Assembly (NCBI RefSeq): GCF_052425735.1
Contig: NC_135770.1
Location: 31,434,001-31,498,000 of the forward strand
DNA length: 64,000 nucleotides
Direction of reading: 5' to 3'
From: Oculina patagonica
Lineage: Eukaryota
Shown here piece by piece: positions 13,879-64,000 of this stretch (position 1 is the stretch's first letter; each line of letters opens with the position of its first letter). The translations under genes and the position numbers were made by a program. A model generated the notes under the pieces. That model did not search any database. It saw only the letters and a program-made list of their open reading frames with translations, and was not told the origin of the DNA.

Positions 13879-14000
13879 AAATTTTCGGTAGAGACTGGAT
13901 CCGAGCTGCTGACATTTCGCTGTTTGCAGAGAGCTCAGGAGGTTGAAGAAGGCCAAATTTTGTGTATTTGTGGGTTCCTTCGCTCAGTGTTTACAGCATC

Positions 14001-17000
14001 ATGGGCGAGAAGCCGTTGACAGACGCGGAAAGGAAGAAGCAAATCTCTATGCGACGTCTCCCAGTCGTCGAGGACGTGAACAGTCTTAAGGAAGCCTTCA
14101 ACCGCCATTTGCACTACTCGCTAGTGAAAGATCGGAATGTGGCGACCAAACGCGATTACTTCGCTTCTCTGGCTCATACAGTTAAAGATCATTTGGTGGG
14201 AAAGTGGATTCGATCACAGCAAGCATATTACGAGAAGGACCCCAAGGTATTTGAATGTTTTGGTTATCCAATTTGTCTCCCGTTGATATCAAATCTCTCT
14301 TGATACAGCGAAAAATATCGTGCTTTTAGCAGCTGATATTAGCTCACCGTATTTGTACACTCAAATTATTTAGAACTGTGTGTGAGTACTAGTTTCTATT
14401 TCAGTCATACATGACCCCATTATGCTTTTTGTTTTAGTCAAAGTACAATTAATGGGTCTTTTAATAGTAGTAGTTTCTTTCAACAGTGAAAATGATAATA
14501 TAAGCCGAAGTTAAACTCTTTTCGACAGACCCCACCTGGGTTTGTGGTTCTTGCAGTGTGCGTACAGAAAACCGCAATTTTTTTATGATCAAAACGGCAT
14601 TCACGCTTATATTGATCATGTTTGCGCTTTGGAGGTTTTCAAAAGAATAGAAATTCATTAAAAATATTGCATACATTTGCCGGTAAATGGCGTATAACAT
14701 TGGCAGAAAAACATGAATTTATTTTGCATATATGATTTTCATCGTTAGTTTGTCTATTGGTCAAGCTTTTCGACCTCAAAATGTCAACATTGAAATAAGT
14801 AAGCTTGAGCTTATTTTTTATCCAGGTTGAATTATTTTGGATTTTATTGGCAAGAAAAATAAAAATTAGAAGTTTGAAAATATTGTACCGGTCATTTAAC
14901 CATTTTATTTAATATACAAACAACCAAATTGGCAACCTCTCCTGATAAATAAGAACAGGCAGAAAATTTTGATTAGGATGGATGGTTTGTTAAAGGTAAC
15001 AGACAAGTTGACATTCCATGACATCTGGTAGACACTGAAATGCCCATCCTATGCAAATTTTATGACTGACAACAGATTGATTTTTGCACTTCTGATTTCT
15101 TGCATTGTGGTTTGTTGCTAGTAATTATTAAACAAAAGAAAGACGTAGTCAGACAGACTTCTTCTATTGCTGGCACACAGAGCTTGGAGGTTTGTTTGAG
15201 AGGAGTATACAGCAGAGATGCCAACCTAAAAAATTGAAATCTGGGAGACCAAATTTTGCACCATGATACCTCTTTTCAACCCCCAAAATGGACCAAAATA
15301 TAGAGCTCCACCAATTCATCCACAAAAATGCATCAAATATTTTAAAATTTCTCCCCAAATCTGCCAAAATAAGATTACATGTAAAAACACATATTTTAGG
15401 CAGTTTTCTTTGTATCTGGGAGACTTGGTGACCTGTATGGGGGACCAGGAGACTTGGTGACCTGTACGGGGGACCAGGAGACTTGGTGACCTGTACGGGG
15501 GACCAGGAGACTTGGCCTGTATGTCGGGAGACTCCTGGATAATCTGTGAGAGTTGGCATAGATTGATAATCATGTATTGATATTAGATTGACACAGCAGC
15601 CTTTTGTCACAACCATGCTCTGTAACTTGCACTCCACTGTTGTAATTAATATTCTTGCACGGTACATGTACATTATTATGTCTATATCCATGTAATTACA
15701 GGGAGAATAAATAGTTCAGTATTAAATTCATTTCGGATCTTGCTGTGTATACACCATCATTATATGTTTTTTTTTTTTTTTAATTAGTTAGCAGCTGCCA
15801 GCATGTACACTTACATGTACACGTAATCAGCATGCACAATTTTGTGCTTCCCTTGAGGACCATATTAATAAAAGAGGTCCAAAGGTGTGAAGAAGGTCCA
15901 AATCTATAACAGGGTATTGTAATGCTAAAATTAACTACCAGTAGTTTATTGTGATAATTTTGCATTGATTTATTGTCAGCGTGTTTACTATCTCTCACTG
16001 GAGTATTACATGGGCCGGGCACTTAGCAACACTATGATCAATCTTGGGATTCAAGGTGAATGTGATGAAGCCATGTATCAGGTGAGAGCTACTGTATGTA
16101 TACTTGACTAAACTGGTTCAGGGCTCGAGATTAACGGTAGCCAACTAGCCAAAGGCTACTAAAATTTAGGTTTTGGCTACCAGGTTTAGCATTCCTACTA
16201 GCCATTTGGCTAGTGAAAAACTCGGAAAAGTCAACTGTTTTTGATAGAAATCAATATACCTGACTTGTGAAAAATTACTTTTGGCTAGTAAAATCTGACA
16301 TGTCACTAGCCAGTAAACCAGTGAGTTAAAAAGTTAGTCTCAAGCCCTGCTGGTTGCTTTTTCCTGAAGATAACTTTTAGACCAGAGGAGCTACATTAAT
16401 GTGGTTAAATTGAATTAAGGCTAAGTTAGACTTGAGCATCTTCATGGCAATCAGGCCCAGGTTGTTCAAAGGCTGGATAATGCTATCCACCGGATAAATT
16501 GGTATCCAGTGGATAGCGTAGTATGTTTTGCTAACACTTATCTGCTGGATAGCGATTTATCCGGTGGATAGTGTGTTCCAGCTTTCAAACAACCAGGGCC
16601 AGGTGTACATGTATAAGGGGACTGCTTAATTGAGGTTCATGGGTGCATCACATCCCATTCGTAGAAGTGCAGTTTGCTGTTTGGCTTCTTGGTGGGCTGG
16701 GTTTTGCTGTCTGCCCTTTTTGCTTCCTTTCTTCCCTCCCTTGTGGGAGGTGCGGTAACCTAATGGTTAGCGCGCTCAACTCTGAGTCGAACCGCCCTGG
16801 TTCGAGCCCCAGTTGGGGGGCTGCGTTGTGTTGTTGGGCAATACGCTTTACTTTCACAACATCTCTCTATCCCAAGGTGTATAAATGGGTACCGGCAAAT
16901 TTACTGCTGAGGAGTAACCTTGGGATGCTTACCCTGGGATGACTAGCATCCCATACAGTAGGGAGTAGCAATACTCCTAGTCAGTTAATGCTACAGAAAC

Positions 17001-20000
17001 CGGGATAAGTTCTGACTGTATGGGCCATTTGGCTCGGACACCTGTAGACTTTACCTTTACCTTCCCTCCTTTACACAATGTAGAATAACTATACATGTAT
17101 TAAGATTTTGGGTTGGGTATTAGGGTTAATTGGTGAGAACGTACACTGATTCAATCAGTGTGAGGATGTCTGGTGTTTAACACGATCAGGGTTACCATGA
17201 ATACTATCATGTTCACTAGAGTTGGACATGAATGAGTTTAAAATGAGAGTTACTTGACTGTCTTTTTTTAACAGGTTGGTCTTGAAATGGAGGAACTAGA
17301 GGAAATAGAAGAAGATGCTGGTCTTGGTAATGGAGGCCTTGGGAGATTGGCAGCATGTTTCCTGGACTCACTGGCCACCTTAGGTTATGCTGCATATGGC
17401 TACGGCATCAGATATGAATATGGAATATTCAAACAGGGTATCGATAGCCACGGAAATCAGGTTACAAACTTGCTACATGTATTTGAATAATCTTATTAGA
17501 CGTTGTAAAAATAATGGGTCTAATTATTAGATGTGTTCTTCCAACGGTTGACTCACTGGAAAAAGATATACAGTTAACTCTCTCTTAACGGACACCTCTA
17601 TAAGACAGACACCTCCATAAGACGGACACCTGGTGATGGTCCCTGCCATTTTTCAGTCATTTTACTGTAACTAAACTCCCTATAAGACGGGCACCTCTCG
17701 ACACTTTGAAACCGTCAACGGACACCTAAGAAGTGTTCTTTTTTGTGGAATAATACTTCAAAACTTCGTGTGAACATAAAGCAAAGGTAGTCAGCGCCTT
17801 ACGGATACCAAGCTTAATCACCAAAAACAATAACGCTTGGACGGTTTACTTCCCTGCTTCAGTGCATGGGCACAAGAGATCGTTTTCTACTTACAGTATA
17901 ACAGTTTGTAGAAGCACTCAACTTTTGCTTCAATAAGCGAATACGGTCTTTTTTATTACTTTAGTCTTGTCCCAGTTTATAAAGTGTGCAGTTACGTTTT
18001 TTAATAGAGGCTATGAACGTTTGCTTGAACAAGCGAACACTGTACACATATAGACATGTTACAGTTTGCAACATGTATGCACTTCCTACTTTTAGGAAGC
18101 AGTAAACTATTGACTGCAATAAAAAAAACGAGTCAATTTTCCAATATTATTTTTGTCCTAGTTTGTAGGGTTGCTTCAACAAGCGACTTTAAACAGACTC
18201 GAAACAGACGTGTATTCATTGTGCATAGCCGTTCAGCTTCATTATCTCAGAATTACTGGTGTCAAATACCCTAGACTCTCTATAAGGCGGACACATCTCT
18301 AAGACGGACAGTTGGGGCCGGTCCCGACGGTGTCTGTCTTAGAGAGAGTTGACTGTACATTGTACATCCTGACGTAAAAAAAAATGAAATGGCAGGCTGC
18401 AGTATAAGCTTATAGACTATAAAGTGGTGAGGTTGGGTAGGGAAATATTTGGCTTAAGGTTGTGGCGTACTGACCAAATGCATTGATTTTCATGAAGAAT
18501 GAATAAGTGCCAAATATTTTATTACACAAAAAAGATGGTTAACCACCAATCAGAGTGGTTTATTGCCAGTCCAATATTTTCTATGTATTGGAAGTCCTTG
18601 GTAAAGTTTGCTTTTGGATTTCCCATTGGGTTACTGCTATCAATTACATGATTGTATGACTAGTAAATTTTAGCTTGCTTTTGTGGATTACCATGAGTAC
18701 AAAGTAGTGGAGAAGTTACAGAGTTCAAAACAAGGCTGCTAGTGTTATCACACCAGTCTTATGTCAACTTCATTGACAACCAATTAAGTACTGCAGTATC
18801 AAATTTAAAATTTTGCTATTTCTCTTGTAGACCGAGTTGCCTGATGACTGGCTAAAGTTTGGAAACCCCTGGGAGAAAGCCAGACCAGAGTACATGATTC
18901 CTGTTCAATTTTATGGAAGAGTGGAGTCAGATGTTAGTGGAAAGAGTCATCGCTGGGTTGATGCAAGCACAGTGTATGCTATGCCGTATGATCAGCCCAT
19001 TCCTGGTTATGGCAATAATACCTGTAACACCATGAGACTGTGGGCAGCCAAGTCTCCAAAGGGTTTTGATCTCTCATACTGTAAGTGAACATGTACATGT
19101 AAATAAATTTATTATATTTAGAAGTTCAAAGTTGAAAGTGTTCAAAGTTGAAAGAAGTTGGAATTATTATGGCAGAGGTGCCAGGTCAAATCATAAGGGT
19201 TTGGTGCTTGCGGTGGCTTACTACAGTTAATTGATAAAAAAGACAGATTTTTCGCAAATAGGAAAATGTGATATTTTGAATTTCCCTATTTAGAAAATAG
19301 CTCAAATTCTGTCTCACAGATTTTTATTTTATTTTGCATGAATCAGAGAGAATTCATAATTTCTGAAATTTTGAGGTGGAGTCATACATGTAGATTTTGA
19401 GAAAAATGCCATTAAACTACTAGTGCCCAGTCCCCTCTTAAGCACCTGGTCATTCACTGTTTATTGATTGTTTATTAGCAAATGCCACATAGATGGTTGT
19501 GCACTGTAAAAAACAATAATTAGAGAAAGATAAAACATTGCTGAACATTTTACAAAAGAGATAAAAGTTTGCTCATTTACCCCCTCAAAACTGTAGTAAA
19601 CCACCATAAATACCATGGATCAATCTTTACTGTAACTACTTGCTTTAAAAGTTTATGTACATGTACATGTATACATTTACATACAGTGTATGTGCCTAAT
19701 TAATTACAATAAATTAAATGTGCCCAAATGGCTTTTGATAGTTGAGTAATGTAGTCTGTCAATGGGTTAAGAAATTCCTGAGTTTTTAATTGAGGATTTT
19801 AAAAAAAGTACATGTATTGAGCATTTGATTTATTTAATTTTATTTTTTCAGTCAATGATGGAGATTACATAAAAGCCGTCCTGGACAGAAATGTGGCAGA
19901 GAACATTTCAAGAGTGTTATACCCAAATGACAATGTAAGATGTATTATATTACACACTGCACAATGCTTGAGCAAATAAATTAGGTAAATATTGCATTGG

Positions 20001-23000
20001 TTAACTGCCTTCAATAATTGTTTGGAAAATGTTTCAGTTTTTTGAAGGAAAAGAGTTACGTTTGAAGCAGCAGTACTTTATGGTTTCTGCAACTCTTACT
20101 GACATTGTTAGAAGATACAAAGCTCCCAAATTTGGCTCCAAGGAAGCAATAAGGACTACTTTTGATGACTTTCCTGACAAAGTAAGTCAATAAGTAATTA
20201 TTTATAATTTTTATTATTAGTATATACCACACAAGTGAATAGTACCTTTCACTCACTCTGATTGGCTAACTCAAGAAGTGATTAGCAAAGTACTATTCAC
20301 CTCCTATCGACTAGTGGAAGAGTAACAAAATGGCTGCTTGTTTAACTTCGGCTACCCAAAATAATGTTTTTGGCTGCTATTTCATTCAGCTTGTGTGACA
20401 TTTTCTAAAACAATATTAATTATTTACCTCTGTCAGTGTCGGTGTTGTAAATATCAACCACTAAATATTCACCTCCACTTTGCTGAATAATTCATTGTTA
20501 ATTTATTCACTGCCTATAAGCTACTTTGTATGAGTCATGTTCTTGGTTTCTTTACAATCTCGCTTTCTGAGGGCTCTTATTTTTTCCCTGCAATGCAAAA
20601 CATTCCTTTGCAAGTTTTATAGGCCAGAAGCTTTCAAGTTTTACAAGGTGTTTTGCAGTGCACAGGTTGTAATCTGAACTAAAATCCCAATACTTTTTAC
20701 CTGTCAGGTCGCCATTCAGTTGAACGACACTCATCCATCTCTAGCTATTCCAGAACTCATGAGAGTATTTGTGGATGTTGAGAAACTCAGTTGGGACAAG
20801 GTAAGCAAGAACAAACAAACAAACAACTTTTAGAGTTCCTCAAGTCAGAATGGCAAGCTGGAATTCAATTTTATTTTTCAAGCCCTGAGTCAAGTCATGC
20901 TTCGGAAACCCCAGATAAGTGCTGGTCTAAAGGCCACTAGGCTCTAATGCAGTCTTTACCTTAAGTGGTACACTGGCAGCTTTTTAGCGGCATGTACTAA
21001 AACCCAAAACAACGAAACGTCGAAACCACCGAAACGAGCGAAACGAAACTAAATCACCGAAACAAGCAGAATCCATTACCATTAATTATTGAGAGCTAAC
21101 TGTAAACAGGCTAACCGGAGTGCATAGTAGGCTAACCGAAGTAAAAAGTAGGCTAACTGGAGTGTGTAGAGTGTATAGCGGAGTGCATAGTAGGCTAAAC
21201 GTTTATTCATTAAAATACAAAAAAAAAAAAAAAAAAAAAAAAAGGCGAAACGGAGTGTATAGTATGGTAAGTGGTGGAATTGTTGAAGTTTTGCTTGTTT
21301 CGGTGATTTCGTTTCGTTTCACTTGTTTTGGCCGTTTCGGTTGTTTCGTTTCGGTGGTTTCGTTTCATTGTTTCAGGTTTTAGTACTTGTCCTTTTTAGC
21401 TGGCAGGCCTTCTTAGATCTGATTGGCCATATACAAAATACTATGTTTTTTAAACAAAACCAGATCTTTGTAGTACGGTACTTGCATAATTACATAAAAT
21501 GTTAATTTCGTTATTTTATAGGCTTGGGACATTTGCGTGAGGACATTTAGCTACACTAATCACACAGTTCTCCCTGAGGCACTGGAGAGGTGGCCAGTGC
21601 ACATGCTGGAGTACATTCTACCACGACATCTCCAGATCATCTATGAAATCAATGCTTTGTTCCTAAAGGTATGTGTTTATTCTAATCACGTTGTATTATT
21701 ACCCTGCATCATTATGTGGGTTGGGTTTGTTGTTGGTTTTTGCCCTTGCTCTGAGAGTTTTTCTCTGGGCTCTCCAGTTTTCCTTCCTCCACCTGAACCA
21801 GAATTCCAATTATTTTGATCTGGAATAGTGGATGAAGTGCCACTGTGTGGAATTGCCACTCTATCTTCTCATTCATTTATTATTTTTAAGCGATGATGAT
21901 CGGTTAGTGTCATTATTTTTTAGACAATTTTTAGCATTTCTAAGTATTTTTATTATATCAATGTAAATAGTTTTATCAATAATATTTTTATAGCCAATTT
22001 ATTATAGTTATTTTTTTCTTTTCATTTTCGCTGAAAAGCCCCCATGGGGAGAGGACAATAAAATTTGTATTTGTATGAGGCGGTTTGCGGGATCTGTTAT
22101 TCTGTTGCGCTTGATTGACGGATCGATAGAACCAAATGGGACTGGGTACTAGCTACAAGAATAAATGTTACGCCAACAAAGATCAAGTTAACAAGAAATC
22201 GCCGTGAAAAACATGAAGCAAAATACTCCTGGAAAGTTAGAAAGGACTAATTCAAAATTTAAACAAAAGAGATAAAATTAATTATAATTATTTGACGAGT
22301 TCTATTTGGTCCAGTAAACAGACATTTTGGCCTGTGTAAGACAATGACAAGACCACATTTGACTTTGGTCGCTTGAGAGAAGTATCGTACATGTATATCA
22401 TCCTTGTTGTTACAGAAGTTGTCAGCTACTTTTATTTAATACAGTGTATACTTTAATTTTTTGACAAAATTAATTTCCTGAAAATTATTCAAGACCCCCT
22501 TGGGATACGTCATTGCTTCTGCATGCACTGCATGCTGTTTAATATTTATCTTTTAATGTAAGATGTGAGAATCTGGAGCTTGCTCCACAGAGCCTATTGT
22601 TGATTTTCATTTGTGACCATACAATTCAGTCTTACCAGCAGATGAAAAATTAAGGGTGCGTTTCTTTGGGAAAATCCAAAATTGGATCATTGATCTCAGA
22701 TCACACGGATACTTTGCTCCCAAAGAAACAAAGAATCCGAAAATGGATTTTTTGCCATGACAACCCCGTAAACACAATTCGCACAGAACATAAAATATCA
22801 GCACAAATTTATTTTTCGTCGAATGTATCCTAGATAAAATAATTTCAGCATACAAAATCTTTTACAAAAATCACACGTCGAAATAGTTCTTCTTTAGCCT
22901 CAAGCACAGTGTGGCGAGAAAGCATCAGAGAGCGAAGAATGTTTGCGAATGATCAATGCAAACTTCACTCGTGACAATTTCAAAAGGATACAACTTCCGT

Positions 23001-26000
23001 AGGCACACGGTGGCTGTTCTAGAAAACCTGTATCCAGTTTAAAATGACACTTCATACCTATCAAGCAAGCGTTTCCTTTTATAGTGAAATATTTTTGTAT
23101 TTTGATCGAAATAACCGCCTGAAAACTTACCGTATGACAATGTTTACAAAGAGCGAACCTGTATTTTCACAGCAAAGACCGCTGGGCCAAGGTACTTTTT
23201 TCGAATCCTTTCCCAAAGAAACGCACGGATCATGAATCCTAAAAATCCGGATTCAGATATGATCTGATGTATCCACTCCGAGTGTGGATTCTTCAGATCA
23301 TTGATCCAAGATTAATCCATTTTCGGATATAGGTAAAGAAACGCAAAATCCGTTTTTGGATCAAGAATCCGGATTTGGATTTTTCCCAAAGAAACGCACC
23401 CTAAGATTAAATTGTTCCTTTACAGAAAGTATCAGAAAAATTTCCAGGAGACATGGACAGAATGCGACGGATGTCCTTGGTAGAGGAAGGACCTGAAAAG
23501 CGCATCAACATGTCGCACTTGTGCATTGTTGGCTCTCATGCAATCAATGGAGTGGCTGCTCTGCATTCTGAACTTCTTAGAACAACAGTGTAAGTCAATA
23601 ATCTTATTATTTTATTTGCTCAAAGCTGTTGATAAACAAAAATTTTCAAAAACCCTCATTTAGGAATGTAGCTGAGAAAACACTAAGCCAGCTCATTAAC
23701 AAGCCCAACTGGCTTTTCTGGCCTTGGCAGCTCTAATAGCTTACCTAGTACATGTAAGTCTGTTTTCATGTGAAATTAAGCCGGATTTAAGTTCTCTTTC
23801 AGCCAGACGAGTGAAATAAGCCAACAGCGCTCGAGCCGGCCCTTTAGCAACATCCCTGCTCATTGTAAACAAGCCTAGCAGAATATCTGTTAAAGTTTCA
23901 CTGATGCAGCACAGTAATAATCAATGTAATTTATGTTTAATTTTTAGATTTAAAGACTTCTACGAAATGTTTCCTGAGAAGTTTCAGAACAAGACTAATG
24001 GTGTGACTCCCCGTCGCTGGCTTCTTCTCTGCAACCCTGGTCTGTCAGACCTCATCTGCGAGGTGACCCTTTGCGAAACAAACAAAATAATGAAGTTTGT
24101 AATGTAAATATTGATTAAATTTAGTGTTTGCTTCATTATGGTGCCAGGACTAATAAAATGAAGTTCAGTGGAATCACATTCAAGTTACTGTATTGAATTT
24201 AACTAACAGGTCTTTTGACACTCAGTGTTGTCATCAACATAGTAATGCCAAGAATCACAAAAAAGGGTTGTAAACTAAAGAGCATTGAACCAATTTAAAA
24301 ATAGTATCTCAACAACTTACAATGCAATACCAGATGATATTTGTTTTCTGGGGGTGGGGGAGTGCATGTAGCTGGGCATTTTGACAAAAAAATGAAATCA
24401 ATGAAATTTTGCTTAAAGCAAATCTTGAGAGTATGAACAAAATTATTTTACTACCCAGAAAATGTCTTACTGCTTGCAAAACTGCCAGCTACATGTATAG
24501 TGTGTTTTTTTAGCCTTATGTTAACCTTTTTTTTTAGAAAATCGGTGAAGGATGGATAACAGATCTGTCACAGCTGAGAAAGCTGGAGAAGTTTGTCAAT
24601 GACAAGAACTTCAAACATGCTTTCATGAGAAGCAAACAGGTACAGTGTAACTATCTTTGTGATTCTACCACGTTTTTAAAGAAGGTAATGAAAATACCAT
24701 TATTTTGTTAAATGTGCAAGGCATGTTGTACATGTATTGGCCCAGGAGTAACATACCAGGATTTTCAGCACAAGTGGTCCATTAATTTTACAGATCATTT
24801 CATCTACATCCTGTCATGTTCATGAACAAAAGCTCAGGTGATTGAATTATTGCCACTTCATGAGGGAAACACAGTGTGTCCCATGTACATGTAAATGGCA
24901 TCAGGAATTCTTACAGCACCATCCATGGGAACTGAAAATACTATTTACATACCTCAATCCTAGAAATGTCACAAAGTAAACACAAGACAGTTTTAACAGA
25001 GTTGTCATTTTCATTGCAGGAAAACAAGATTAGACTTGCAGACTACATCAAGAAAGAGTACGATATTACTGTCAATGTGAACTCTATTTTTGATGTCCAA
25101 GTAAAGCGAATCCATGAGTACAAAAGACAGCTAATGAACTGCCTTCATGTCATTGTGCTGTACAACCGTAAGCATAAGATGCAATTTAATGTCTCATTTA
25201 AATCAAAATAGGTCTAGGGGCTACAATCCAGGACAAAACTGTCTAAATTTAGCCAAATTTCCACTAATTTGTGTACCACAGTTCTTTTTTTTAACCCTTG
25301 CCTCTCCCACCTCCCCCATTTCAAACTTGCTCAAGTTGTGATAACAAAGCCGGATGAATTGCATACCCTGTGAAACAACATAATTTGAGAAGGGGGATAA
25401 AATATGTTATTTGTTTGCAAGTCAAGACATTTTGCAAAAAGTGAGTGATATTCGTTTGTCTCAACAAGTTTGGTCCAGGATTGTAATTTTATTTTACCTT
25501 ATTCTTACTAATTTTCACGATTTACGTGATTTCAAAATAGTCGCGAAATTTGATACGCGCAAAAAAAAATTGCGTGAAATTTAAACACGCGGAAATTAAT
25601 ATCATATTATGTATCAAAGCAATAAAAATTTTAAATGTTTGGCACTACAACTATCTACATTTGAAAATATCTCTCCGCACCCTTCCTCTGACTACTGTTT
25701 TCTTCCGCTTGTAAATTGGCCAAAATCTCTTTAGTATAGTCACCAATGTTTCCGTTTGCAGACTCCTTGTAGTTACATTGAGCCAGACCTTTGTATATTT
25801 CCAGTAGCTCCTTTTTCTTTAACGACTAATCCATAGAACACTGACAAAATCATGAAATTTAATACACTTTTGCTCTAACTTTTCTTGCAATCGCGAAAAT
25901 TAATACTCGCGAAATTTGCCTGCCGATTTTTCGCGAAATTAAGTATGCACGAAAATTAGTAAGAATAAGGTAGACAATACAGTGCACACCTGTCTGCAAA

Positions 26001-52377: not shown

Positions 52378-52545
52378 TACATGATTATACGCTACAGCTA
52401 CATGATTGTACACCTGAACCAATTCTTAAGCCACACATGTGCCATGCATTGAGAAAACGTTTTTAATTGGTGTTACTTTGTTTCACCTTTCAAACAAGAA
52501 GTTAGTCCTCCATGCACCCTAACAGTGTCTTTAAAACAAAGTAAA

Positions 52546-54228
52546 TTATTCCTTATTCAGAAAGATCTCAACTGCATTTTTGGAATCCTTGTAGTACTTT
52601 ACCACTCGGTCAAATTCTTTAGGATCCAAGTCAACAAGATCAATGTTGTAGTGATACACATCACCACAAGTCATTTCAACTCTTGGTAGTGTAGTCTCCT
52701 TCTTTGAAGATTTCTGGAAAGCTATCATTACAGAGCAGTCCTTTGCAGTACTCGCAACAGCAAATTTACAGATTTTGAGAACTGCATTATATAAATTATC
52801 TTGATCACTTATATCAGCATTTAAATCTAGACTTTTGTCTGAGATTCTAGAGTTGTTGCTAACAAGAGAAGAGGCAACTGCTTTCCAGAGAGGTAAATTG
52901 TAAGGACCATCGACACCAAGCTTGTCTCTTAGTCCTGGGTTACACTCAAAGTGACTGATTACTTTCTTGTAGAGAGGATAAATCCCCTCGACATCAATGT
53001 CGTCTAATTTCTGTAATGACAAAAGCTGTTGCAGAACGCCTCCATTTCCAAACTTCAAGCAGTTGACGTTACCTTGAATATCAATGTTGGAGTTGTGAAC
53101 CTTGCTTTTTTTACACATCGGAGTAGTTGGTGACATGTCAACTTCATTCTGTTGTACTTGGTTTGTCTTTGAGTCATTGATTAAAATTTGAAGCAAAATG
53201 TCCAGGAATTTCGTGGAAAAGGGACCTACATAGCCACACTTGTGAGCCTCTGTTGTCATGTCATCTCTACAGCTGTGACCTACTGAAGTCACACAATCTC
53301 CATGCTTGTGATCAACTGTGGTCACATTATCACTACACTTGTGACACTCGGTGGTCACGCTATCACCACATTCGCAACCTTCTGTGGTCACACAATCTAA
53401 AAAAAGCTTCATTTCTTGCAGAGACATCTCAAAATAATTCTCTGCACAACACACACTCCCTTCCTGAACAGCTTTCTGGACTAATTCCTCTGTGAACATT
53501 GCACTGCCATCACAGAAAACACGCAAATTGTTCTGGGGGTCAGACACCAGACATTCCAAGGCATACATAACTCTTTTTGGTTCTCCCGAGAATAAATCCA
53601 AGGGGCAGTACTTGCTTTCTCTGTTGTACTTCCCTTCTTTAACCTTGGAGCTCTGAAGCATACAATAATGACAGACTGAATACTTTGTCGCTCTAGCTGG
53701 GTCAATGAACGGTGAAGTGGGAACAAAGCCACATTTTGGCTTTATCTCGACAGAGAAGGTTGGATTAATGGTTTTGATTGCACATCGAGACTTTCCTTCG
53801 GTTGAATTAGCTTGTGGAACAGACGGAAGAAAACAGAAATCAGGCATCAGAACCCCAGAAGAACAGTTTTCGTCAATCTCTTTGTCAAGTCTGTGTTCTG
53901 GGCGAAATCCTCGGCATATTTCATTCATTGCTGATGCAAAACCTTGTGGAATAGAAATTACCTTTCCTACATGAACGTAGTTGTTTCCCATTAGCGGTGA
54001 TACAACGTGTTTGGCGAAATCAAGGTTGTGTAACATCTCTTGCACGTAATTAAATTCCTCATCTTTCGTTGCGGACGATTTTTTACATTCGTGCTTTCGT
54101 AAACGCAAAACTGTTTTCAGTTTGTTTAGCGATACAACCATAGTCCAGGATCCTTCGCATCGATAACTCCACTCATGTGGATCTTTAAAATACTCAGAGA
54201 CATATGAACACACCGTGTTGTCCGCCAT
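52546..54228 (-). CDS. IPPK: Inositol-pentakisphosphate 2-kinase (IPK1), single coding exon, 560 aa
   Basis: Motifs WSYRCEG, EIKPKCGF, CHYC, YCPLDLFS, PQNNLRVF, AKDCSVMI, DLDPK. First ATG is at 54228 (the ORF-track start at 54240 is TTG). Confidence 0.93.
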   Translation of the reverse strand: MADNTVCSYVSEYFKDPHEWSYRCEGSWTMVVSLNKLKTVLRLRKHECKKSSATKDEEFNYVQEMLHNLDFAKHVVSPLMGNNYVHVGKVISIPQGFASAMNEICRGFRPEHRLDKEIDENCSSGVLMPDFCFLPSVPQANSTEGKSRCAIKTINPTFSVEIKPKCGFVPTSPFIDPARATKYSVCHYCMLQSSKVKEGKYNRESKYCPLDLFSGEPKRVMYALECLVSDPQNNLRVFCDGSAMFTEELVQKAVQEGSVCCAENYFEMSLQEMKLFLDCVTTEGCECGDSVTTECHKCSDNVTTVDHKHGDCVTSVGHSCRDDMTTEAHKCGYVGPFSTKFLDILLQILINDSKTNQVQQNEVDMSPTTPMCKKSKVHNSNIDIQGNVNCLKFGNGGVLQQLLSLQKLDDIDVEGIYPLYKKVISHFECNPGLRDKLGVDGPYNLPLWKAVASSLVSNNSRISDKSLDLNADISDQDNLYNAVLKICKFAVASTAKDCSVMIAFQKSSKKETTLPRVEMTCGDVYHYNIDLVDLDPKEFDRVVKYYKDSKNAVEIFLNKE

Positions 54229-54348
54229 CTTAGAATTCAATGATCTTGACGATAAACTTCATGCCAGCGTACATGAAGCGTATAATGATGTTACGTTTCG
54301 TTACGACTTACATGAAGAGTAGATTGTGACACGTGCAACATTTTCAAT
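54229..54348. promoter_or_regulatory. Very compact bidirectional promoter / 5' UTR region of IPPK and CEBPZ
   Basis: 120 bp between divergent ATGs. Both ATGs sit in an AAnATGGCGGACAA context. E-box CACGTG at 54330-54335 and several CpG/ACGT motifs. Confidence 0.75.
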
Positions 54349-57300
54349 ATGGCGGACAAACAGAGCAAGCTTGCGAAGAGAAAAAAGAAATTCAGTTCAA
54401 AAAATGCCCATGATTTAACACTAGAAGATGTTCTTGCGGTCGGAGGAGACAAGGTTGGTATCATCTGTGATTTCTCTGTTCTGTTTCTCAAGGGGCGATA
54501 AATGTTTTATTGAAAATTAAGCTTAGAAGTTACAGAATTTTCATCATGATGATATAAGTCTGTCTTTCTGATTGCTCTTAACTTGGAAGGATGACTTTGA
54601 AATGATGAAGGATGTAGACGTATCAGGCGATTTTGTTGTCGATGAGGAGACGTCAGAAAACATAGAAGAAAAAGAGGTAAAAGAATGTGTATTGCAAAAC
54701 TTGATTTAAACTTACATGTAACTTACACATGTTACATGTGTTACATTTGTAAGTTACATTTGTTGCACTCACTCAAAGGCATTATTACTCGTACAAAGCA
54801 TAAACTGTCATCCTTTCCCCCACAAAACAGGTAATGTCATATATCAGAGAACTTGGTTTGGATAAAATCAGCTTTAAAGGCAAAGAAATGAAGTAAGTAC
54901 ATGTACATGCATTGCATTTATTAAAAAAAAAAAAAAATGTTTACTGGCTTATACAGGAATTCACTCTAATGAATCATCCATCATGACTCTTACTGAGGGG
55001 GTGTTAATGGCAAAAATTCAATATTTTGATAAGACACGGTACAGAGGTCTACTCTTATTTTGAATAGGAACAATAAAATTCGTGGATATAGAGCTTAAAG
55101 AGTTTCCAGTGGGATTTTCTTTCAAATGTCATCATCATCAACATCATCATTGTCATTGTCATTATCATTGTCATCATCGTTGTCTTCATCATATTCATCG
55201 TCAACATCAAAAACTGAAACAAAGCTAATCCTTCAAACTTGAGAAATTTGTTCGTTATATGACAACAAGACATGGCAAAAGGACTTGATCACTAGGCAGA
55301 ATTAAATTTGAATTTAATTTATACAGTTAATGGATGCAAGTGTCTCCATTGTTGTGTTTTGGATGCAAGTAGGTAATTGGAAATTTGAGTTCATTATTGC
55401 AAAACTCAATACTGACAACTTATTTATAACTGCAGAAAAATTTATTTCAAATTATAAAATAAATTTATTTTTCAACAGTGAGAGTGCTGCTAAAGAAAAC
55501 AGCTCAAACATGTTTCCAAAAAGTGGAGAAATTCTAAATAAAGATGAAACAGAAAAAGAAAATAAAGGAAAGAAAGAAAAGAGGCTGAAATCAAAAGATA
55601 CAGAGAAAGGAACAGACCTTGCAAAATCCAAAATGACTGTACAGGAACCCCAAACCTTACCAGAAAGAAAAGGTGGGCCACACCAAAAGCTGCTGATTAA
55701 ACCTGGTGGGCTGTGGTATGAACTGGTGAGTATTGGCAAAAGAAAAAAAAATGTTAACTTTATATTTTTATGCATTTGATGTGTGGCACATATTGTACAA
55801 GCTAAAGCATTAAATTCCATTTTGTAGTTATGATGATAAAAATATTACCCAACTTGTTTGGACGCAGGGGACCAAAAAACTACTTGGCCTGTCTGCTGCC
55901 AGATCTTTTGTTTTTAGAAATGGGCGTACCAAACGTCACTAAGCGTTAATAAAACCAGATTGGGCTGGTGCAATGGCAGGAGGGCAAAATTAATTGGCCA
56001 ATAAATTTTGCCCTCCTGCTTTTGTACCAGCCTTGCAATTAAACTGGTTTGAATAAAAATATGTCCATGTATTGTTTTTGGTTTTCCAAACTGAATCAGT
56101 ATGGTTATATAATAATCACTGGTAATAAATCTTACAACTTCAAGAAACTTTCTGAATAATTGCATGTGACTGTAAGTATCATTTTACACACTGTAGGTTG
56201 TTGAAGAGAAAGCCACCTACCCCTCCCCCAATCAAACTGATATTGTCCAGCTCTCAAAAGAAGCAGCTGATCTTCTGGAGAATGAAGTTAGCATCTATGA
56301 AAAAAGTGAGTCTGAGTGTGCAATTATTAAGTAGGTGATCACTTACATCTTCATCTAAACATGTATTCTAAACATTTTATTATTGACGTACAAGTCATGT
56401 ACATGTACATATTTTGCACAATGTATAATAATACAATTGTAAATGTATATTTGCAATCAAGAGGTCCTGTCTGGAGCAGATCAAAGCTAGCAAGCAACAG
56501 AAAACCTATGGTAGCAGTTCAAATTCATGAATTTATTTTGTGTCAGCCCATTAGTGACATACCTACATGTAGATTGGCTGGTCAATTTCCCACCAGTTAA
56601 AAAGACAACGACTTTGTATAACAGCAACAGAAAAGCTCAGAAATTTAAAATTCTGTTTTCTTACAAGTGGACTCAGTTGTTTAATTAAGAAGCCAAGCTA
56701 TAGCACTTCTTTATCCTGTTTTATTTTTTATTGTTATAGTGAAAGCAAAAGAAAAGTCATCAGATTCACAGTGGTTAAAATCTGTTGTAAGTTCAGGAAC
56801 ATTGAACGACAAAGTAGCTGCTCTTACTGTTCAAGTACAGGTTAGTTTTAAAACATTTCTTATTGGAATTTTCCCTGATGTCCTTGGCATGTTTCTGATA
56901 GCGTCTTTTTTATACTGAATGACCTTAAAGTAATTTTATTTCAGTCTGTGTATAATGAAAAAAATAACTTAATATAAGGTGACACTTTTGATTGTAACTA
57001 ATCAAATTACATTCTAAGTTCAACAGTATTTCAAATGTTTCTGATTTTTTACATGTAGGAGTCTGCTGTACATCGCCTGAAAACTTTGGACATGTTACTT
57101 GGCATGGCTAAAAAGAAGGGAAGAAGAGAAAGCATAATAGCTGTTGGTAAGATGCCCAGGGTTTCTTGCATGCTGTGGTAAATTATTATTCTCAAAATTA
57201 TGAACTGAATAATTATCACCTTTAGTAACATGCAGTTCTTAAAAACATAAAAAAAGTACATTTTGTAGGACTGGTATACAGTCGTGTACATAGTGCATTT

Positions 57301-60300
57301 ACTATTATTTTCCAAACTGCGTGTCTCAGGTGAGTTAAATGATTAAAAATGTGTGATCCTAATTCACTGTCTTGCTAGACAAGTCCAGCAACAATAGGTC
57401 AGAGCGCCATAGGAACTACATTGTAAGAGGGAGATTAGTTAATTGTTTTAATACAGAGATGCCAACCTAAAAAATTGAAAATTATCCGGGACACCTAACA
57501 TTTTGTGCCACGATACCTCTTTCCAATCCCCCCAAAACATACCAGTTAAAAAAATAGAGCTCTGCCAATTTATTCAAAAATTAAAATGAGTCGAGTATTT
57601 TTAAATCTCCCCCTCCCCCCCCCCCCAAAAAAAAAAAAATTGCTCAATTAAGCTCAAAAACACATATGCTTAAAAGCACTTTTCTTCGTATCCCGGAGAC
57701 TTAGTGGCCCGTACAGGAGACCAGGAGAATTGGTCTGTATGCGGGAGACTCCCGAGGAAAGTTGCCATAGAAATTAATATACAGAGCTCTCACATGCTAT
57801 CACATGGTGACATACCCAGTAATATCCCTTTTTTATTTTTTAAATTCACAGATATGTTGAAAGAACTTTGGATGACATTGTTGTTGCCAAGCGATCATAA
57901 GCTGAAAAAATTTGCCCAGGTCTGTGAACTCTAGATTTTTCATTTTTTTGAGTATTTTGTGGAAGTTGGAGGTATGAGAAATGCTCGCTGTATGTTGTTT
58001 TTTGACTTAAAAGAGACCAATTGCTGTCAGTAATACATTTAGATGCACATATGTACTGTATGTATTAAAAACATGCATGTTTTTTTTTATATTGCCTCTA
58101 ATACACAGCATCCCTTGACATCATTAGTGGAAATTGTCCACAAAGGAGGTGGCTGGGATGAACGTGACAGGCGACTTATTCTGTGGCATTTTGAGGAGTT
58201 ATTAAAACAAAGATACAAGGAGTTTATTGAAGTTTTGGAGGTAACAAAGCAATTCCATGTAATTTCACAATTAATTCCTACTTTTAATTAATAGACTGGC
58301 AAAGATAATTAAAACTGACTACCAGTGTTAAATCTTTGACAGTTTCTTACTCAAATGGACTCAATAGTGTAATAAATGGTACTTAAATGTTATTTTGTTA
58401 TAATCAATAAGACATAACTTAAACTTATATTAAATAATTTGCTAATTAAAAGTTAACTCTTTGCAGAAACTTCTTCAAGATACTTTGGTAAACATCAGAA
58501 GCAAAATGCTAGGTAGGCAGGAACATGCACTGTACATTGTAGACTAAATAATATTATCATGCTTAAAACATTTTGTATACCTGCCAACTTTTTCTGGGAC
58601 AAAGGCGTGAGATTTTTATCCTGAGAGTGCTAGGATTTCCGGAGATGACACGACCATTTCCGAAGATTCCCGAAGATATCCGAAGTATTCCGAAAACGTT
58701 CAACATATCCCGAACACAGTCCCAAGACGTGTTTTGCTAAACACGAGCACATTCTCAATGTTTTTCTTGTCGAGATTCTGAAATTTCTGAGAAAGTATCG
58801 TCATTAACTCAGTTTACATGGAGTTTTCGTTTCTCACATTGGTTTGAAATCACATAGTTTTGGAAAGTGTGCCATTTATGGTTGCAATAACTCGCATTAT
58901 TCTACAAGGCGTGAGAAATTGGTTCGTAAGCGTGAGTTGGCGTGAGATCGAAGATTTCAACTCGCAGGCGTGAGACTCACGCTTAAGGTGGCCCGCGGGT
59001 ATTTATGAGGCTGACAGTTCCCTTTTTAAGCGCGTTTTAAAACGGGAAAACATGAAGCGATTGCTTAGATTTTTGAGAATCTGAAAAAATAATGTTTAAA
59101 TTATATAAAATGATAAATTTTATGGCGATCAAACGCGATTTGTTAAAGTTATGAGTGATTTTTGAAAGCCTTCGTTTTTAATAAAATGCGATTATTTTGA
59201 AAATGCCACGGTGAACTTTTCTGTAATTACCCCAAAACGCTGCCAAACAGTTGAAGTTTAATCACAACAACTTACAGGAAAATCCACTCCGTAGATTTCC
59301 TGAACGAGCGACATCTTTATTTTGCCTTTAAAAACTGTTGTGTTATGCGTCTGACTTGACCGTCGCATAAATTTGATACTTATACTAACCCAGTACTGAG
59401 CCAGTTTTGAGTCTGATGTCACCTTAATCTTGTGTGTAAAAGTTAAAAAGATCGTGTATATACATCAAATGTTAGCAGTCAATAAAGATGGATGGTTTTC
59501 AGTCGAATTTTTGAAAATATCAAACAAATGACGTTATTTAGAATTGCGGAAAATTTGTCGATTTGTTTTTCATTTTTTTAAAGCTGCAGCTAGAACAGGA
59601 TATTGCAAAGATTTGTGCCGAGTTTCAGCGTGTTCCTATCATACGGTTTGAAGAATTTCGGTCGCAAAGTTGGGTACATTTGCTTTTCAAGTTCTAATCG
59701 CTTTGTAAACCTCGCATTTCGAATGAAATTATTCTGTTGTTGTTTGAAGAGAGGTGTTACTTCCAAATTCCGCACGATCTTCTACCGTCAGGAAATACAT
59801 GTGCAGGAACGGTATTTGTCATTTTAGTAGTAACTATTTCAGGCTGTGTTATTTCCAAGTGGCAGAAGATTGTGCGGAATTTGAAAGCAACGCCTCTCTT
59901 CGAAAACAACAGTATAATTTCATTCGAAATGCGGGGTTTACAAAGCGACCAAATCTTGGAAAGTAAATGTACCTGACTTTCCGACCGAAGTTCTTCAAAC
60001 CGTATGATAGGAACACGCTGAAACTCGGCACAAATCTTTGCAATATCCTGTTCTAGCTGCAGCTTTAAAAAAATGAAAAACAAATCGACAAATTTTCCGC
60101 AATTCTAAATAACGTCATTTGTTTGATATTTTCAAAAATTCGACTGAAAACCATCCATCTTTATTGACTGCTAACATTTGATGTATATACACGATCTTTT
60201 TAACTTTTACACACAAGATTAAGGTGACATCAGACTCAAAACTGGCTGGTACTGGGTTAGTATAAGTATCAAATTTATGCGACGGTCAAGTCAGACGCAT

Positions 60301-63300
60301 AACACAACAGTTTTTAAAGGCAAAATAAAGATGTCGCTCGTTCAGGAAATCTACGGAGTGGATTTTCCTGTAAGTTGTTGTGAGTAAACTTCAACTGTTT
60401 GGCAGCGTTTTGGGGTAATTACAGAAAAATTTACCGTGGCATTTTCAAAATAATCGCATTTTATTAAAAACGAAGGCTTCCAAAAACCGCTCATAACTTT
60501 AACAAATCGCGTTTGATCGCCATAAAATTTATCATTTTATATAATTTAAGCATTATTTTTTCAGATTCTCAAAAATCTAAGCAATCGCTTCACGTTTTCC
60601 CGTTTTAAAACGCGCTTAAAAAAGGGAACTTTCAGCCTCATAAATACCCGCGGGCCACCTTAAGGCGTGAGAGTTGGCAGGTATAATTTTGCTGCTTGAG
60701 TAGTATACATGTAATTAACACATTATGTACAAAATTGTGCACATTAAATCCAATGTTATAATGGTAATTATTCTACATGTACATGTAAATACAGCTGTTG
60801 TATTAAAATGCTTACTTATTAATTTTGCAGGGACAATATTTGATTTGTTGTCGGAGAAACCAGAGCAGGAGCAAGTGAGTCACTAAGTGTTATCAAACTC
60901 TTACGAAAAGTTAATCAGAAATGTACATACATGTTATGGTTCAATTTTACCCTTCAAGTTGGTACAATTTGGAATTTTCCTCTGGAGAATAAACATTAAA
61001 GTGGGGACTCTGGGTTACTTCCTGCAGTGAAACATAACCAGTACAAATGTAGGGTTTACTAATGACTGTGAACTGAATGTTTCAATGCTGTTTGTTGTTC
61101 CAGGTTCTGTTGAGTCTGCTTGTAAACAAGATAGGAGATCCAGACAGAAAAGTGGCATCAAAAGCTGTTTATCTGACAAGAAGTTTAGGTAAGAAATATA
61201 ACCTAGGGATGATCTCTGTCCCTATCACTCCCAGAGTCTAACCTCAAATACATGTTATTGCCTTTTTCCTAAAGTTCCGTGGCCACGGTGTTTGAGTCTT
61301 GCTGCTTGATCGCCATTTGCATTAATTTGTGTTTCATGTTGCACGTTATATTGGAAAAGAAAGGGACTGGTCGCTACATCTACATTGTATCTGGTTCTAA
61401 ATCACATCTGTAGATAAGCCTCTGCCATTAGTGCGTGATACGATTCAATGAGTGGAATCATTAATTATATGGTACATTTTCTTTGCATTTTCATTGAACT
61501 GTATTTATATTATTTTGTCACATAGCTCTGCCCCTGATTGTGTATACAATGCACCTGTTAACTTAGCTGTTTCTTTTCCTTCTTACTCAGTCACTAAGCA
61601 TCCAAATATGAAGCTTGTGGTCACAAAGGAGATTGAGAAGCTTCTCTACAGACCCAACATTGCCCTCAAGGCTCAGTAAGTGTACAGATATAACATAACT
61701 TTAGAGGCTCTACCATTTACGACCTGCAATACAAGTCTATGGTGCTGTTGGGCCTCTATATACATGTGACAGTAATTGGAATTTGGTCAGTGGTTGGTGT
61801 ATTGGTGGGTCGGTCAGTAAGTTTGTGGTCAGGTCGTTGGGTTGGTGGGTGGGTGGGTACAGTAGGTGGGTCAGTTATTCAGTAGGAAGGTCAGTTGGTA
61901 GGTCGGTTGGTTGGGCAGCCAGCTGGTCGGTCTTATTATAGTATCAAAAAGTATAGCTGATTTCTGTGTTGTTTTTGTTTTGTTTTTGCAGATATTTTGC
62001 TGTATGTTTTCTTAATCAGCTGATCCTCACTAAACAAGACAGCGAACTTGCCACCAGACTAATTTCTATCTACTTTTCCTTCTTTGGTGTAAGTTACAGA
62101 AACTATTGCAATACAGTGTACCACTTTATATCTACATGTAACAAATTACCCTATTTTTTGTGTTGTGTGAATAGGCATTCTTAAAAAAAGGAGACATGGA
62201 AGCAAAAATGTTGAGTGCCCTCCTCACAGGAGTCAACAGAGCTTTTCCTTTTGCCAAAGGTATGAAACAGTAACGAGTAACAGACAGTAATCTTATAATA
62301 GAAACGTTGAAAATAGGTAAAAGCTCATTGCAGTCTTGTGGACCATAGGAGCCAGATGGCATGAGAGGACTTGATGCTGGCGCTTGACTCTTGTTTCTGT
62401 ATCTTGAAGTGACTACAGTGTAGGAGTATTGCTGCTTCCCCCTGGGTGGAATGCTTGGCCATCGGAGGCCACCACCCAGCATTTTGTCACATTGTGCTTA
62501 GAATTTCCCACTGCCCATTTATAGTCCTAGCCTTTTCATGCTACAGAAACCCGAGTTAAAGCTCTGAGACTACGAGCCAATTGGGCTTAAAAGGCTTTAC
62601 TTTTTTGTGTGAGGAGCTCTCAATCTGGAATCCAAAGAAGTAACCATGCATTTGCCCCCTGTGCCTTCAAAAGGCTACGACAAAAACGTATTAATTTCAC
62701 AAATCCACAAACCATAGTTAGCATACTGTATGTACGAATTGTGACCTTTCGTGTTGAAGCCCCAAATAGGTACAATAAATGCATGTAGCAGTAACAGCTA
62801 TTTTTTGTTTGTTTGTTTTGTTTTCAGAGGAGGATGAGCAGTACAATGAGCAAATCAACACACTATTCCGTACAGTACATATTGGAACCTTTAATACAAG
62901 TGTACAGGTACGTTGATCTCAACACTGATTGGCTGCTGGTTTCTCTTTACTTTCGCGTGATAAATGAACTTAACTAGTAGGGAGAATTTGGAAGCACACC
63001 GTGGTACTACAGCGTTAAAAATGCAGTCAGCTCCCCGACCTGGCTAAATTGCAGACTTTGGCTGTAATCAACTTCTCCCTTTGGTAGATACAGAGGGTAT
63101 TGAATTCATCTTCAAAACACGCATAAAAAATTGACGAGCTTGCATATACCTCCTTTTTCACGGCGTTGAACAATTTTCTTTTTGTCGTTTTTTTAGGCTC
63201 TTATGCTTCTGTTTCAAGTCATGGAATCAAGGTACTTCACATTTATATTGACAGATTACATTGTGTATTTTCAAAAAGTAAAAGTGATGCATTGGTGAAT

Positions 63301-63440
63301 GTAGTTTGATACTGAATAATAATAAAAAAGATTAGTAATAATTGTTTTTCCTTTTCCTCAGGCAGTCTGTGTCAGATCGATTTTATCAAGCACTTTACGC
63401 CAAACTGCTTGATCCGAGCTTAAAAACCTCCACGAAACAG
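54349..63440 (+). CDS. CEBPZ: CCAAT/enhancer-binding protein zeta (CBF/Mak21/NOC1 ribosome biogenesis factor), 5' part; 18 exons seen, gene continues beyond the window
   Basis: Exons 54349-54453, 54590-54676, 54831-54892, 55479-55725, 56197-56305, 56740-56840, 57059-57146, 57852-57919, 58109-58240, 58467-58512, 60831-60874, 61104-61188, 61591-61675, 61992-62088, 62175-62259, 62828-62907, 63197-63231, 63362-63440. Motifs SGTLNDKVAALT, KPEQEQ, LVNKIGDP, HPNMK, LSALLTGVNRAFPF, FNTSVQALMLLFQ, DRFYQALY. Confidence 0.93.
55128..55208. repeat. Degenerate (CAT)n microsatellite
   Basis: gtcatcatcatcaacatcatcattgtcattgtc... Confidence 0.8.
58576..60685. mobile_element. Host MITE (~430 bp without its insert), hAT-like, 6-bp TSD
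   Basis: attttg|tatacctgccaact ... agttggcaggtata|attttg, with internal ggcgtgaga subrepeats. Confidence 0.8.
58987..60659. mobile_element. 1673-bp palindromic non-autonomous DNA transposon, TTAA TSD, GG...CC termini (Kolobok-like)
   Basis: ttaa|ggtggcccgcgggtatttatgaggctga ... tcagcctcataaatacccgcgggccacc|ttaa. Arms ~58987-59786 and ~59861-60659 are near-perfect reverse complements. Confidence 0.9.
61795..61930. repeat. Degenerate (GGTN)n microsatellite
   Basis: ggtgggtcggtcagt..ggttggtgggtgggtggg..ggtaggtcggttggttgg. Confidence 0.7.
62340..62602 (-). mobile_element. Degenerate family-A SINE fragments
   Basis: aggagtattgctgcttcccc..ggaatgct.g.ccatc..cccagcatt..cccatttata, then atgctacagaaaccc..ctttac in the opposite orientation. 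Confidence 0.55.
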
Positions 63441-64000
63441 GTGAGCACTAAGGGTTGTCTTTTTAATCTTTTTTGTAAGTTAGCCTGCCGTATGTACTTT
63501 ATATGTACCGTTACATGTAGTAAGACCTGCCAAGGTCCAGAAATCTCGATGTACTCCAGAGGCGGTCCCTCGCCTGCCTGGTTATCTAGCTACCAGACAA
63601 AATCCTTTTGGGAAGTTGATTTTTGATGAATAGGATGTATCCTCTTGACAAGAACTGCTGCGAGAACTTTCGGAGATCTTGTTAACCTCTGAGGAATTTT
63701 TGAGAGCGGCATATTTGATTCCTCGCGTAAGACTGCGTCGCGCGTTGTTTTTCTCGGCCGGCACGCGGCCTCGTATTGGATTTTGGAAATAGTTTTATAA
63801 TGTTCCACTGGTTCTGAGTTTCTGAGCGCTATATTAAAACTTCACTTTAGAAAATCGTGCAACATACTCAAAGACCTTCTCAGCCAATGAAAATCCATTG
63901 GCGTTTTGGCATAAGCGACATGTCCCGCGCTTTTCATCGGTTGCAGGTTTTTCCCTTGGAATCCATTTGGTGTTGGTATACATAAAGCCGTATTCTCTCT

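Follow-up and report, generated by a model that had tools for sequence, protein, structure and literature searches.

The question raised by the stretch of DNA analysed here is why a single 8-bp word, TACATGTA, recurs throughout the introns of two housekeeping genes of Oculina patagonica and is rare in the DNA around them. The stretch, called the window below, comprises 64,000 nt of contig NC_135770.1 (GCF_052425735.1; 31,434,001-31,498,000, forward strand), and positions are counted from its first base. The genes are glycogen phosphorylase (PYG; 13990-31529, + strand), identified from its exon open reading frames and a Pfam Phosphorylase match on the last exon, and a CEBPZ/NOC1-like gene of the CBF/Mak21 family (54349-64000, + strand, continuing past the window end; Pfam CBF match at 63342-63626). 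The copies are very likely excision scars of Tc1/mariner-type elements, the reading proposed by the initial annotation and supported by the comparisons below; they would be young for the most part and arise at a much higher rate where gene bodies are methylated. Full-text literature searches brought up no paper in which TACATGTA is called a transposon scar or is said to be enriched in the genomes of corals.

An exact search of the window returned 33 copies, an excess of about 27-fold: shuffles that preserve dinucleotides gave an expectation of 1.22 +/- 1.02 and never more than 4 copies. Of the 33, 31 lie in introns of the two genes, and the enrichment reported there by the initial annotation is upheld. 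All 31 positions that it listed are correct; two copies, at 17474 (PYG intron) and 36570, had been overlooked. Its remark that none was noticed elsewhere is accordingly right for 1-14 kb (zero copies) and wrong for 32-52 kb (one copy, 36570). Once homopolymers are set aside, TACATGTA is the top 8-mer of the window by over-representation; G8 and C8 are more over-represented because of ten poly-C/poly-G tracts of 12-20 nt (at 2608, 4294, 13628, 29507, 31061, 33958, 35805, 39164, 46891 and 57615). The excess is sharply confined to the exact word. Its one-mismatch neighbours occur in 0-12 copies each, both strands counted, the outer T...A is present on 33 of the 58 ACATGT sites of the window, and among TA-X-TA words with X of 2-6 bases in the window genes it is the sole outlier (z = 16). 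Exon-like conserved blocks of the window contain no copy. The flanks of the copies all differ, and the copies are therefore not a dispersed repeat family. Nor is the word an assembly artefact, since assemblies made independently of one another contain it, as do metagenome scaffolds and Logan contigs.

The PYG body holds 21 sites in 17.5 kb, all intronic. All sites were taken from the exact search and are given without strand: 15376-15383, 15663-15670, 15812-15819, 16606-16613, 17092-17099, 17474-17481, 19094-19101, 19385-19392, 19809-19816, 22388-22395, 23749-23756, 24490-24497, 24729-24736, 24886-24893, 27251-27258 (30 bp upstream of a miniature element at 27289), 28739-28746, 29265-29272, 30911-30918 and 31298-31305 (last intron), together with an overlapping double, TACATGTACATGTA, at 19658-19671. 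The CEBPZ-like gene holds ten in 9.65 kb, at 54713-54720 (where relatives are unalignable), 54898-54905, 56400-56407, 56564-56571, 57050-57057, 60706-60713, 62133-62140 and 63512-63519, with a second double TACATGTACATGTA at 60774-60787; both doubles, noted earlier, are real. The copy at 19094 lies 8 nt past the GTRAGT of a PYG 5' splice site. At the matching splice site of a Montipora-like contig (L003, 10195) an independent copy lies 1 nt past GTRAGT, and four other corals have no scar there.

Outside both genes (36.8 kb) there are two sites, 36570-36577 and 52084-52091, the latter within a miniature element at 51864-52379; the binomial probability for this regional bias is p = 5e-10. The upstream 13.9 kb has no copy and the middle 21 kb has two, and in both regions the CpG observed/expected ratio (CpG o/e) is 0.96, compared with 0.50 in PYG and 0.64 in the CEBPZ-like gene. 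With CpG o/e taken as a proxy for gene-body methylation, scar density in the CpG-depleted gene bodies, which are presumably methylated and transcribed in the germline, exceeds that of the adjacent unmethylated DNA by a factor of at least 10.

Confinement to CpG-depleted regions is also what would be seen if the word were a methyl-CpG decay product of TACACGTA, TACGTGTA or TACGCGTA in methylated gene bodies. One site in close relatives does read TACACGTA/TACATGTA (L014:1904), and one double reads TACATGTACGTGTA. However, an order-3 Markov model trained on nothing but the two CpG-depleted gene bodies expects only 2.5 copies where 31 are observed, so that the enrichment persists after correction for CpG decay; with the motif masked from the background, the expectation in the genes falls to 1.3. 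The would-be precursors are nearly missing from the window (TACACGTA and its reverse complement TACGTGTA occur once, TACGCGTA never), they show no excess in 35 kb of unmethylated DNA, and a CpG precursor is present at one of about 25 sites informative between relatives, where most differences are 6-bp indels. CpG decay is rejected as the main source, a role in which we regard it as highly improbable; it contributes single cases.

Orthologous DNA was retrieved by searching singly with the exon of IPPK (inositol-pentakisphosphate 2-kinase, which lies between the two genes) and with one PYG exon. The closest relative, L001 (GCA_044670265.1), is 88% identical in IPPK and 83-91% identical in noncoding DNA; it covers 47-55 kb of the window only and provided a single informative window site. 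L002 was aligned to 32-63.5 kb of the window at about 75-85% identity. Three groups of contigs, each made up of close haplotigs or congeners, allow comparison at shorter range: L014, L015 and L016 (ERZ25071797), at 94% and 98% identity; L003, L017 and L018 (L003 and L017 from ERZ25067889), which are 99.3-99.8% identical and represent a PYG locus called Montipora-like because the contig also carries an IPPK that groups with IPPKs from Montipora capricornis and M. foliosa; and L019 and L020 (ERZ25067879), about 94-95% identical. In several coral assemblies in ENA one locus is represented by two or three contigs at 94-99% identity, which may be haplotigs, may be recent duplicates or may stem from mixed genotypes; such contigs are helpful for polymorphism and misleading for copy-number claims. 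Six further loci retrieved via the PYG exon (L004-L013) align to the window in exons only, their introns being unalignable, and were used for density and within-group comparison.

The regional bias recurs in these relatives. On the CEBPZ side of L002 there are nine copies in 9.9 kb (CpG o/e 0.50), and the 10 kb orthologous to the unmethylated middle of the window has three, two of them just past IPPK. The Montipora-like PYG carries 21-23 copies in 20 kb, and L019 and L020 carry 21 and 18 in 21.8 kb, mainly on the CEBPZ side. The sites themselves are at non-orthologous positions: single sites turn over, and the bias is a property of the genes or of their chromatin across corals. The earlier suggestion of traffic aimed at methylated gene bodies is thus borne out in part, as the bias to CpG-depleted genes is real and shared with other corals; CpG o/e being a proxy, the tie to methylation is a correlation only.

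How the word arises is seen where relatives differ at single sites. At 54898 the window reads AAGTAAG-TACATGTA-CATGC and L001 reads AAGTAAG-TA-CATGC, an exact 6-bp indel at a bare TA. At the TA orthologous to 54898, L002 (about 9240-9260) has a different, longer insertion, TACAATCGATCATG, which may be another visit to the same target; at 62133 the comparison with L002 is complex, with longer TG/TA-rich sequence there. In the other direction, L002 carries TACATGTA at 21334, 11633 and 8216 where the window has TA, with one exact 6-bp gap and two 5-bp gaps beside base runs. L014:5481 has the word where both L015 and L016 have TA. L003 and L018 (16944) read GATAC-TACATGTA-ATTATTG where L017 reads GATAC-TA-ATTATTG; these haplotypes are about 99.3% identical, and the 30 bases to either side of the indel match throughout. 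L019 and L020 share ten sites and differ by six 6-bp TA/TACATGTA indels (L019:6919, 5325 and 5013; L020:5817, 12002 and 702) and by a 12-bp difference at L019:3512, which is a double. A repeat copy at L003:4461 has the word where a paralogue in L002 has TA; this was the only paralogue found for a test of polarity by multiple repeat copies. L020:8297 carries a 14-bp scar composed of TACATG and CTACTAAG, the reverse complement of the adjoining flank CTTAGTAG; such a fold-back is typical of break repair.

In these comparisons the scar holds a duplicated TA and the empty allele a single TA (54898/L001, L002:21334, L014:5481, L003:16944/L017, L019:6919, L020:5817 and others). The initial annotation had proposed a search for 6-bp indels of TA versus TACATGTA at orthologous sites; at least 12 clean or near-clean cases were found in five coral lineages, compared with four differences overall that are accounted for by substitutions (L004 versus L005-7; L014:1904; L019:8643; L019:11903). 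Across 84 kb of close-pair alignment, TA/TACATGTA makes up five of the 14 six-bp indels, TA/TACAGTA or TA/TACTGTA three of the 13 five-bp indels, and TA/TATGTA one of the 21 four-bp indels. A specific process that adds CATG plus a second TA to a TA target does therefore exist, has acted repeatedly and recently, and is accompanied by other classical Tc1/mariner scar types.

Two same-TA differences between close haplotypes involve other junctions: L003 20294 compared with L018 (TACATGTA and TACATGAACCATA) and L020 6131 compared with L019 (TACATGTA and TACAAGTGCATGTA). The 9-mer ATGAACCAT of the former site also occurs in a tRNA-like short interspersed element (SINE) inserted 84 bp upstream in L017 only.

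Insertions of a hexamer could in principle come from replication slippage of TACATG, in the manner of a microsatellite. The doubles TACATGTACATGTA exist, and the 54898 site is formally a tandem duplication of TACATG beside a pre-existing CATG. Clean insertions are nevertheless seen where the target TA has no TACATG beside it to serve as a template (ACTA|ATT in L017, TTC-TA-CTC in L015/L016 and GCT-TA-GAT in L020), and no array exceeds two units. Slippage is therefore rejected as the main source; it is the least credible of those considered, with next to no chance of being right.

The same comparisons bear on the possibility that TACATGTA is a functional palindromic motif for a dimeric factor, selected in housekeeping gene bodies; a CATG-reading BEN-domain protein would be an example. 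In its favour are the form of the word, a palindrome of 8 bp with sharp edges, its enrichment in the same genes of several corals, and the existence of CATG-binding BEN proteins (PMC11472053). Positions are nevertheless unconserved, the window having no site in common with L001 or L002, and presence or absence is polymorphic between haplotypes. Roughly half of the sites are shared in pairs about 94% identical and nearly all in haplotypes 99% identical; in the former, retention is close to the neutral expectation. As sites are kept no better than under neutral decay, nothing points to positional constraint. Moreover, the word originates as a 6-bp insertion that duplicates the TA, an event that would not result from selection acting on point mutations, and it is accompanied by junction variants and by +4 and +5 scars. 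A binding motif is thus very unlikely to be the explanation.

These junction variants are of the form TACA-N1-TGTA, of which the window genes contain ten, compared with 1.8 expected, and the rest of the window one; L002 has four against 0.9 expected, and L003 likewise. Variants with longer spacers drop back toward expectation. The ten are TACAGTGTA (TA-CAG-TG-TA) at 19682-19690, 22440-22448, 24641-24649, 62112-62120 and 62414-62422; TACAATGTA at 27533-27541; and TACATTGTA (TACA-T-TGTA) at 18356-18364, 57417-57425, 58533-58541 and 61381-61389, again without strand. The first TA of the variant at 18356 is the right target duplication of an element at 17569-18357. Variable end joining would account for such a series better than a binding site would. 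Of the shorter junctions, TAC(A/T)GTA is slightly raised in the window genes (12 compared with 8 expected), and TACATA/TATGTA, the +4 words, are at expectation (24 compared with 25).

Relative to the two genes, both of which are on the + strand, the one-base variants show a strand bias. Nine read TACA[G/T]TGTA and one (27533) reads TACA[A]TGTA; the five whose extra base is C or G are without exception TACAGTGTA, never TACACTGTA (two-sided binomial about 0.02). An orientation bias of elements in introns, combined with unequal trimming of the two ends, could produce this pattern.

The flanks of 72 sites, symmetrised, show a target signature. A is present at -3 in 51%, the figure for TAs in general being 32% (p = 3e-5); C at -4 and G at -1 are also favoured, giving roughly CATG|TA|CATG. 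A palindromic, AT-biased preference around the TA (A at -3, T at +3) is a feature of Tc1/mariner elements, and the A at -3 resembles the target preference reported for Sleeping Beauty, ANNTANNT. Two doubles are seen where about 0.46 would be expected without preference (2010 TAs in the genes, 31 events). Because the resident elements described below share this signature and sit in scar-like sites, re-insertion is a reasonable account of the doubles, and CATG|TA contexts resembling a scar would then be favoured targets.

As to age, one-mismatch relatives of the word number 30 in the window genes, compared with 20.7 expected, while the exact word numbers 31 compared with 1.3. The low ratio of decayed to intact copies therefore places the mean scar age near 4% divergence. 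The description of the sites as a fossil record in the initial annotation is misleading in this respect, as most of the scars look young and some are still polymorphic.

Candidate sources of the scars are present in the window as TA-flanked miniature elements, given here without strand. Two lie in PYG introns and have termini CAGT(C/T)AACTC: a miniature inverted-repeat element at 17569-18357 (termini CAGTTAACTCTCTCT / CAGTCAACTCTCTCT) and a miniature element at 27289-27468 (termini CAGTCAACTC, left flank CATG|TA). A third is located immediately 3' of PYG at 31713-31937 (termini CA(A/G)TGAAACCCCG), a fourth, of 119 bp, at 34866-34984 (termini CACGGT(A/G)CGATTTTGTCGCATGCGA), and a fifth, of 516 bp, at 51864-52379 (25-bp termini CAGTACCGCT(C/T)AGAAATAAGCGTCC, right flank TA|CATG). 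The CAGT(C/T)AAC terminus of the intronic elements recurs in the Montipora-like locus, which has an element with a CAGTTAAC terminus, and CATG adjoins the TA in three of the 14 flanks of extant TA-CAGT elements. The sources are probably non-autonomous miniature elements with 5'-CAGT...ACTG-3' ends, which would link these residents to the scars, although no single site connects a given element with a given scar.

The 516-bp element contains two inverted arrays of CpG-rich 7-8-nt units (TGCGTAT / CTGCGTAT) near its ends, at 51907-52009 and 52256-52350; from their sequence and placement they may be predicted to act as subterminal transposase-binding repeats. A further TA-flanked structure lies in a CEBPZ-like intron at 58984-60662. 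It is a near-perfect foldback of 1.68 kb with arms of about 700-800 bp and termini AGGTGGCCCGCGGGTA, and is probably a foldback-type transposon or one with long terminal inverted repeats. A 406-bp element in L015 (21331-21736) shares the AGGTGGCC terminus with it. A separate element at 59273-60372 was rejected as an artefact of this foldback.

The favoured explanation would proceed as follows. Insertion would duplicate the target TA, and excision would cut a few bases inside each end, so that the flanks retain TA-CA and TG-TA; this would imply a 2-nt stagger. End joining with both 2-nt overhangs kept would then give TA-CA-TG-TA, a net gain of 6 bp relative to the empty TA, and TACA-N-TGTA, TAC(A/T)GTA (+5) and TATGTA (+4) would be minor products. 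The gene-body bias would be accounted for most simply if elements land in those regions, or can leave from them, far more often, whether by preferential landing or by easier access of transposase to germline-transcribed chromatin. Selection against resident copies, acting alone, would lower, not raise, the number of scars.

This scheme is close to that of Tc1 and Tc3, which duplicate a TA target, have CA...TG ends, and are cut from the donor with 2-nt 3' overhangs that leave TA-CA and TG-TA. The TA duplication is common to both, and the coral scar reads as these two flanks joined. It differs in outcome. The initial annotation took TACATGTA to be what Tc1/Tc3 elements are known to leave; instead, the usual scar of Tc1 in Caenorhabditis elegans is +4, TATGTA or TACATA, in 73-78% of events (PMC12632400). 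The +4 word is unenriched in the coral genes, where the dominant scar keeps both overhangs (+6). Furthermore, worm scars have been studied at single loci, whereas the coral scar is the top 8-mer of gene bodies. Sleeping Beauty and mariner leave TAC(A/T)GTA (+5), made of the TA duplication and the 3-nt overhangs of CAG...CTG ends (PMC7827188). TA/TACAGTA and TA/TACTGTA do occur among the recent coral indels, but as a minor class. Membership of the source elements in the Tc1/mariner superfamily is for these reasons probable and unproven, since the outcome departs from the textbook.

A closer match in length is Minos, whose footprint is also +6 and consists of TA, four terminal bases of one end, and TA. 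The coral scar has the same net gain and the same TA-NNNN-TA architecture, and the scars might thus come from a non-classical element with palindromic CATG termini and a 4-nt stagger as in Minos, or from another TA-duplicating superfamily. Self-complementary 4-nt overhangs would anneal perfectly and, by analogy with the Minos-type scar, give a uniform TA-CATG-TA, and the +6 scar is indeed far more uniform than those of Tc1 or Sleeping Beauty (PMC12632400; PMC7827188). The four coral bases, however, are CA and TG, which would require CATG termini, and none were found in the coral scans: 200 kb of coral sequence yielded no TA-flanked CATG-ended element, while TA-CAGT elements are present, and in a relaxed scan (13 of 16) the only CATG-ended pairs were the scar pairs 19094/19665 and 54898/56407. 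The +5 scars and the TACAGTGTA variants also fit CAG...CTG ends. We consider such an element unlikely, if a more serious competitor than the other explanations discussed above.

Several observations weigh against excision of Tc1/mariner-type elements as the source. A dominant and very uniform +6 scar is unusual in comparison with Tc1 (+4) and Sleeping Beauty/mariner (+5). A survey of excisions in rice, which likewise inferred past excisions from polymorphic sites between close genomes, found clean scars in 8 of 94 cases and deletions or filler in most (PMC4423477); such heterogeneity contrasts with the coral, where one uniform scar dominates and in certain genes reaches a density of about 1 per kb. 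Tc1/mariner elements are not known to favour gene bodies, and integration of Sleeping Beauty is near-random genome-wide (PMC7827188), whereas the coral scars concentrate in gene bodies. The window contains no Tc1/mariner transposase. No orthologous site was seen empty, occupied and scarred, nor with an element in one genome and TACATGTA in another, in the small sample of polymorphic insertions available (L014-L016, L003/L017/L018, L019/L020 and window/L001); those in L014-L016 and L019/L020 are TTAA- or TTA-flanked elements and a tRNA-like SINE, with no TA-CA...TG elements among them, and the region of the element at 51864-52379 is too diverged in L001 and L002 for an empty site to be read. 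The difference between L014:1904 and its relatives is a CpG/TpG change. Finally, no outgroup roots any of the indels, which are read as gains because the 27-fold excess requires a process that creates the word.

Between the two scar-bearing genes lies IPPK (52546-54240, - strand; Pfam Ins_P5_2-kin, 4e-86), a single-exon gene that is scar-free. Its coding sequence contains at 53236-53398 an insert of four to five tandem 33-nt (11-residue) repeats rich in Cys, His and Thr, and the length of IPPK among corals ranges from 525 to 652 residues. Two long open reading frames on the - strand, at 40310-41356 (348 residues) and 44620-45594 (324 residues), have no Pfam match; they are collinear and conserved in L002 (75-81% nucleotide identity) and are located within the scar-free unmethylated middle of the window.

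Excision scars are usually seen experimentally, one locus at a time; here the word tops the 8-mers of two gene bodies and is still polymorphic, and distant corals carry it in the same genes but at other positions. On the practical side, motif finders would pick up TACATGTA, and it could be mistaken for a regulatory element. If the excision explanation is true, housekeeping introns see much more cut-and-paste traffic than one would judge from the element copies resident there, a gene-body or methylation bias would be new for Tc1/mariner elements, and the word would provide a simple sequence marker of past transposon visits, and possibly of germline-active chromatin, in genomes without epigenomic data. 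A broader picture can be offered tentatively, as one that may well prove wrong: stony corals may harbour a long-lived family of miniature transposons that target TA, present in at least five lineages, the Montipora-like one among them, and cycling with a preference for housekeeping gene bodies that are methylated and transcribed in the germline. Its uniform +6 scar would then become a preferred landing site, scars would form a major class of small indels in those introns, with about one third of the recent 6-bp indels, and their density could be read from sequence alone as an indicator of chromatin state in the germline.

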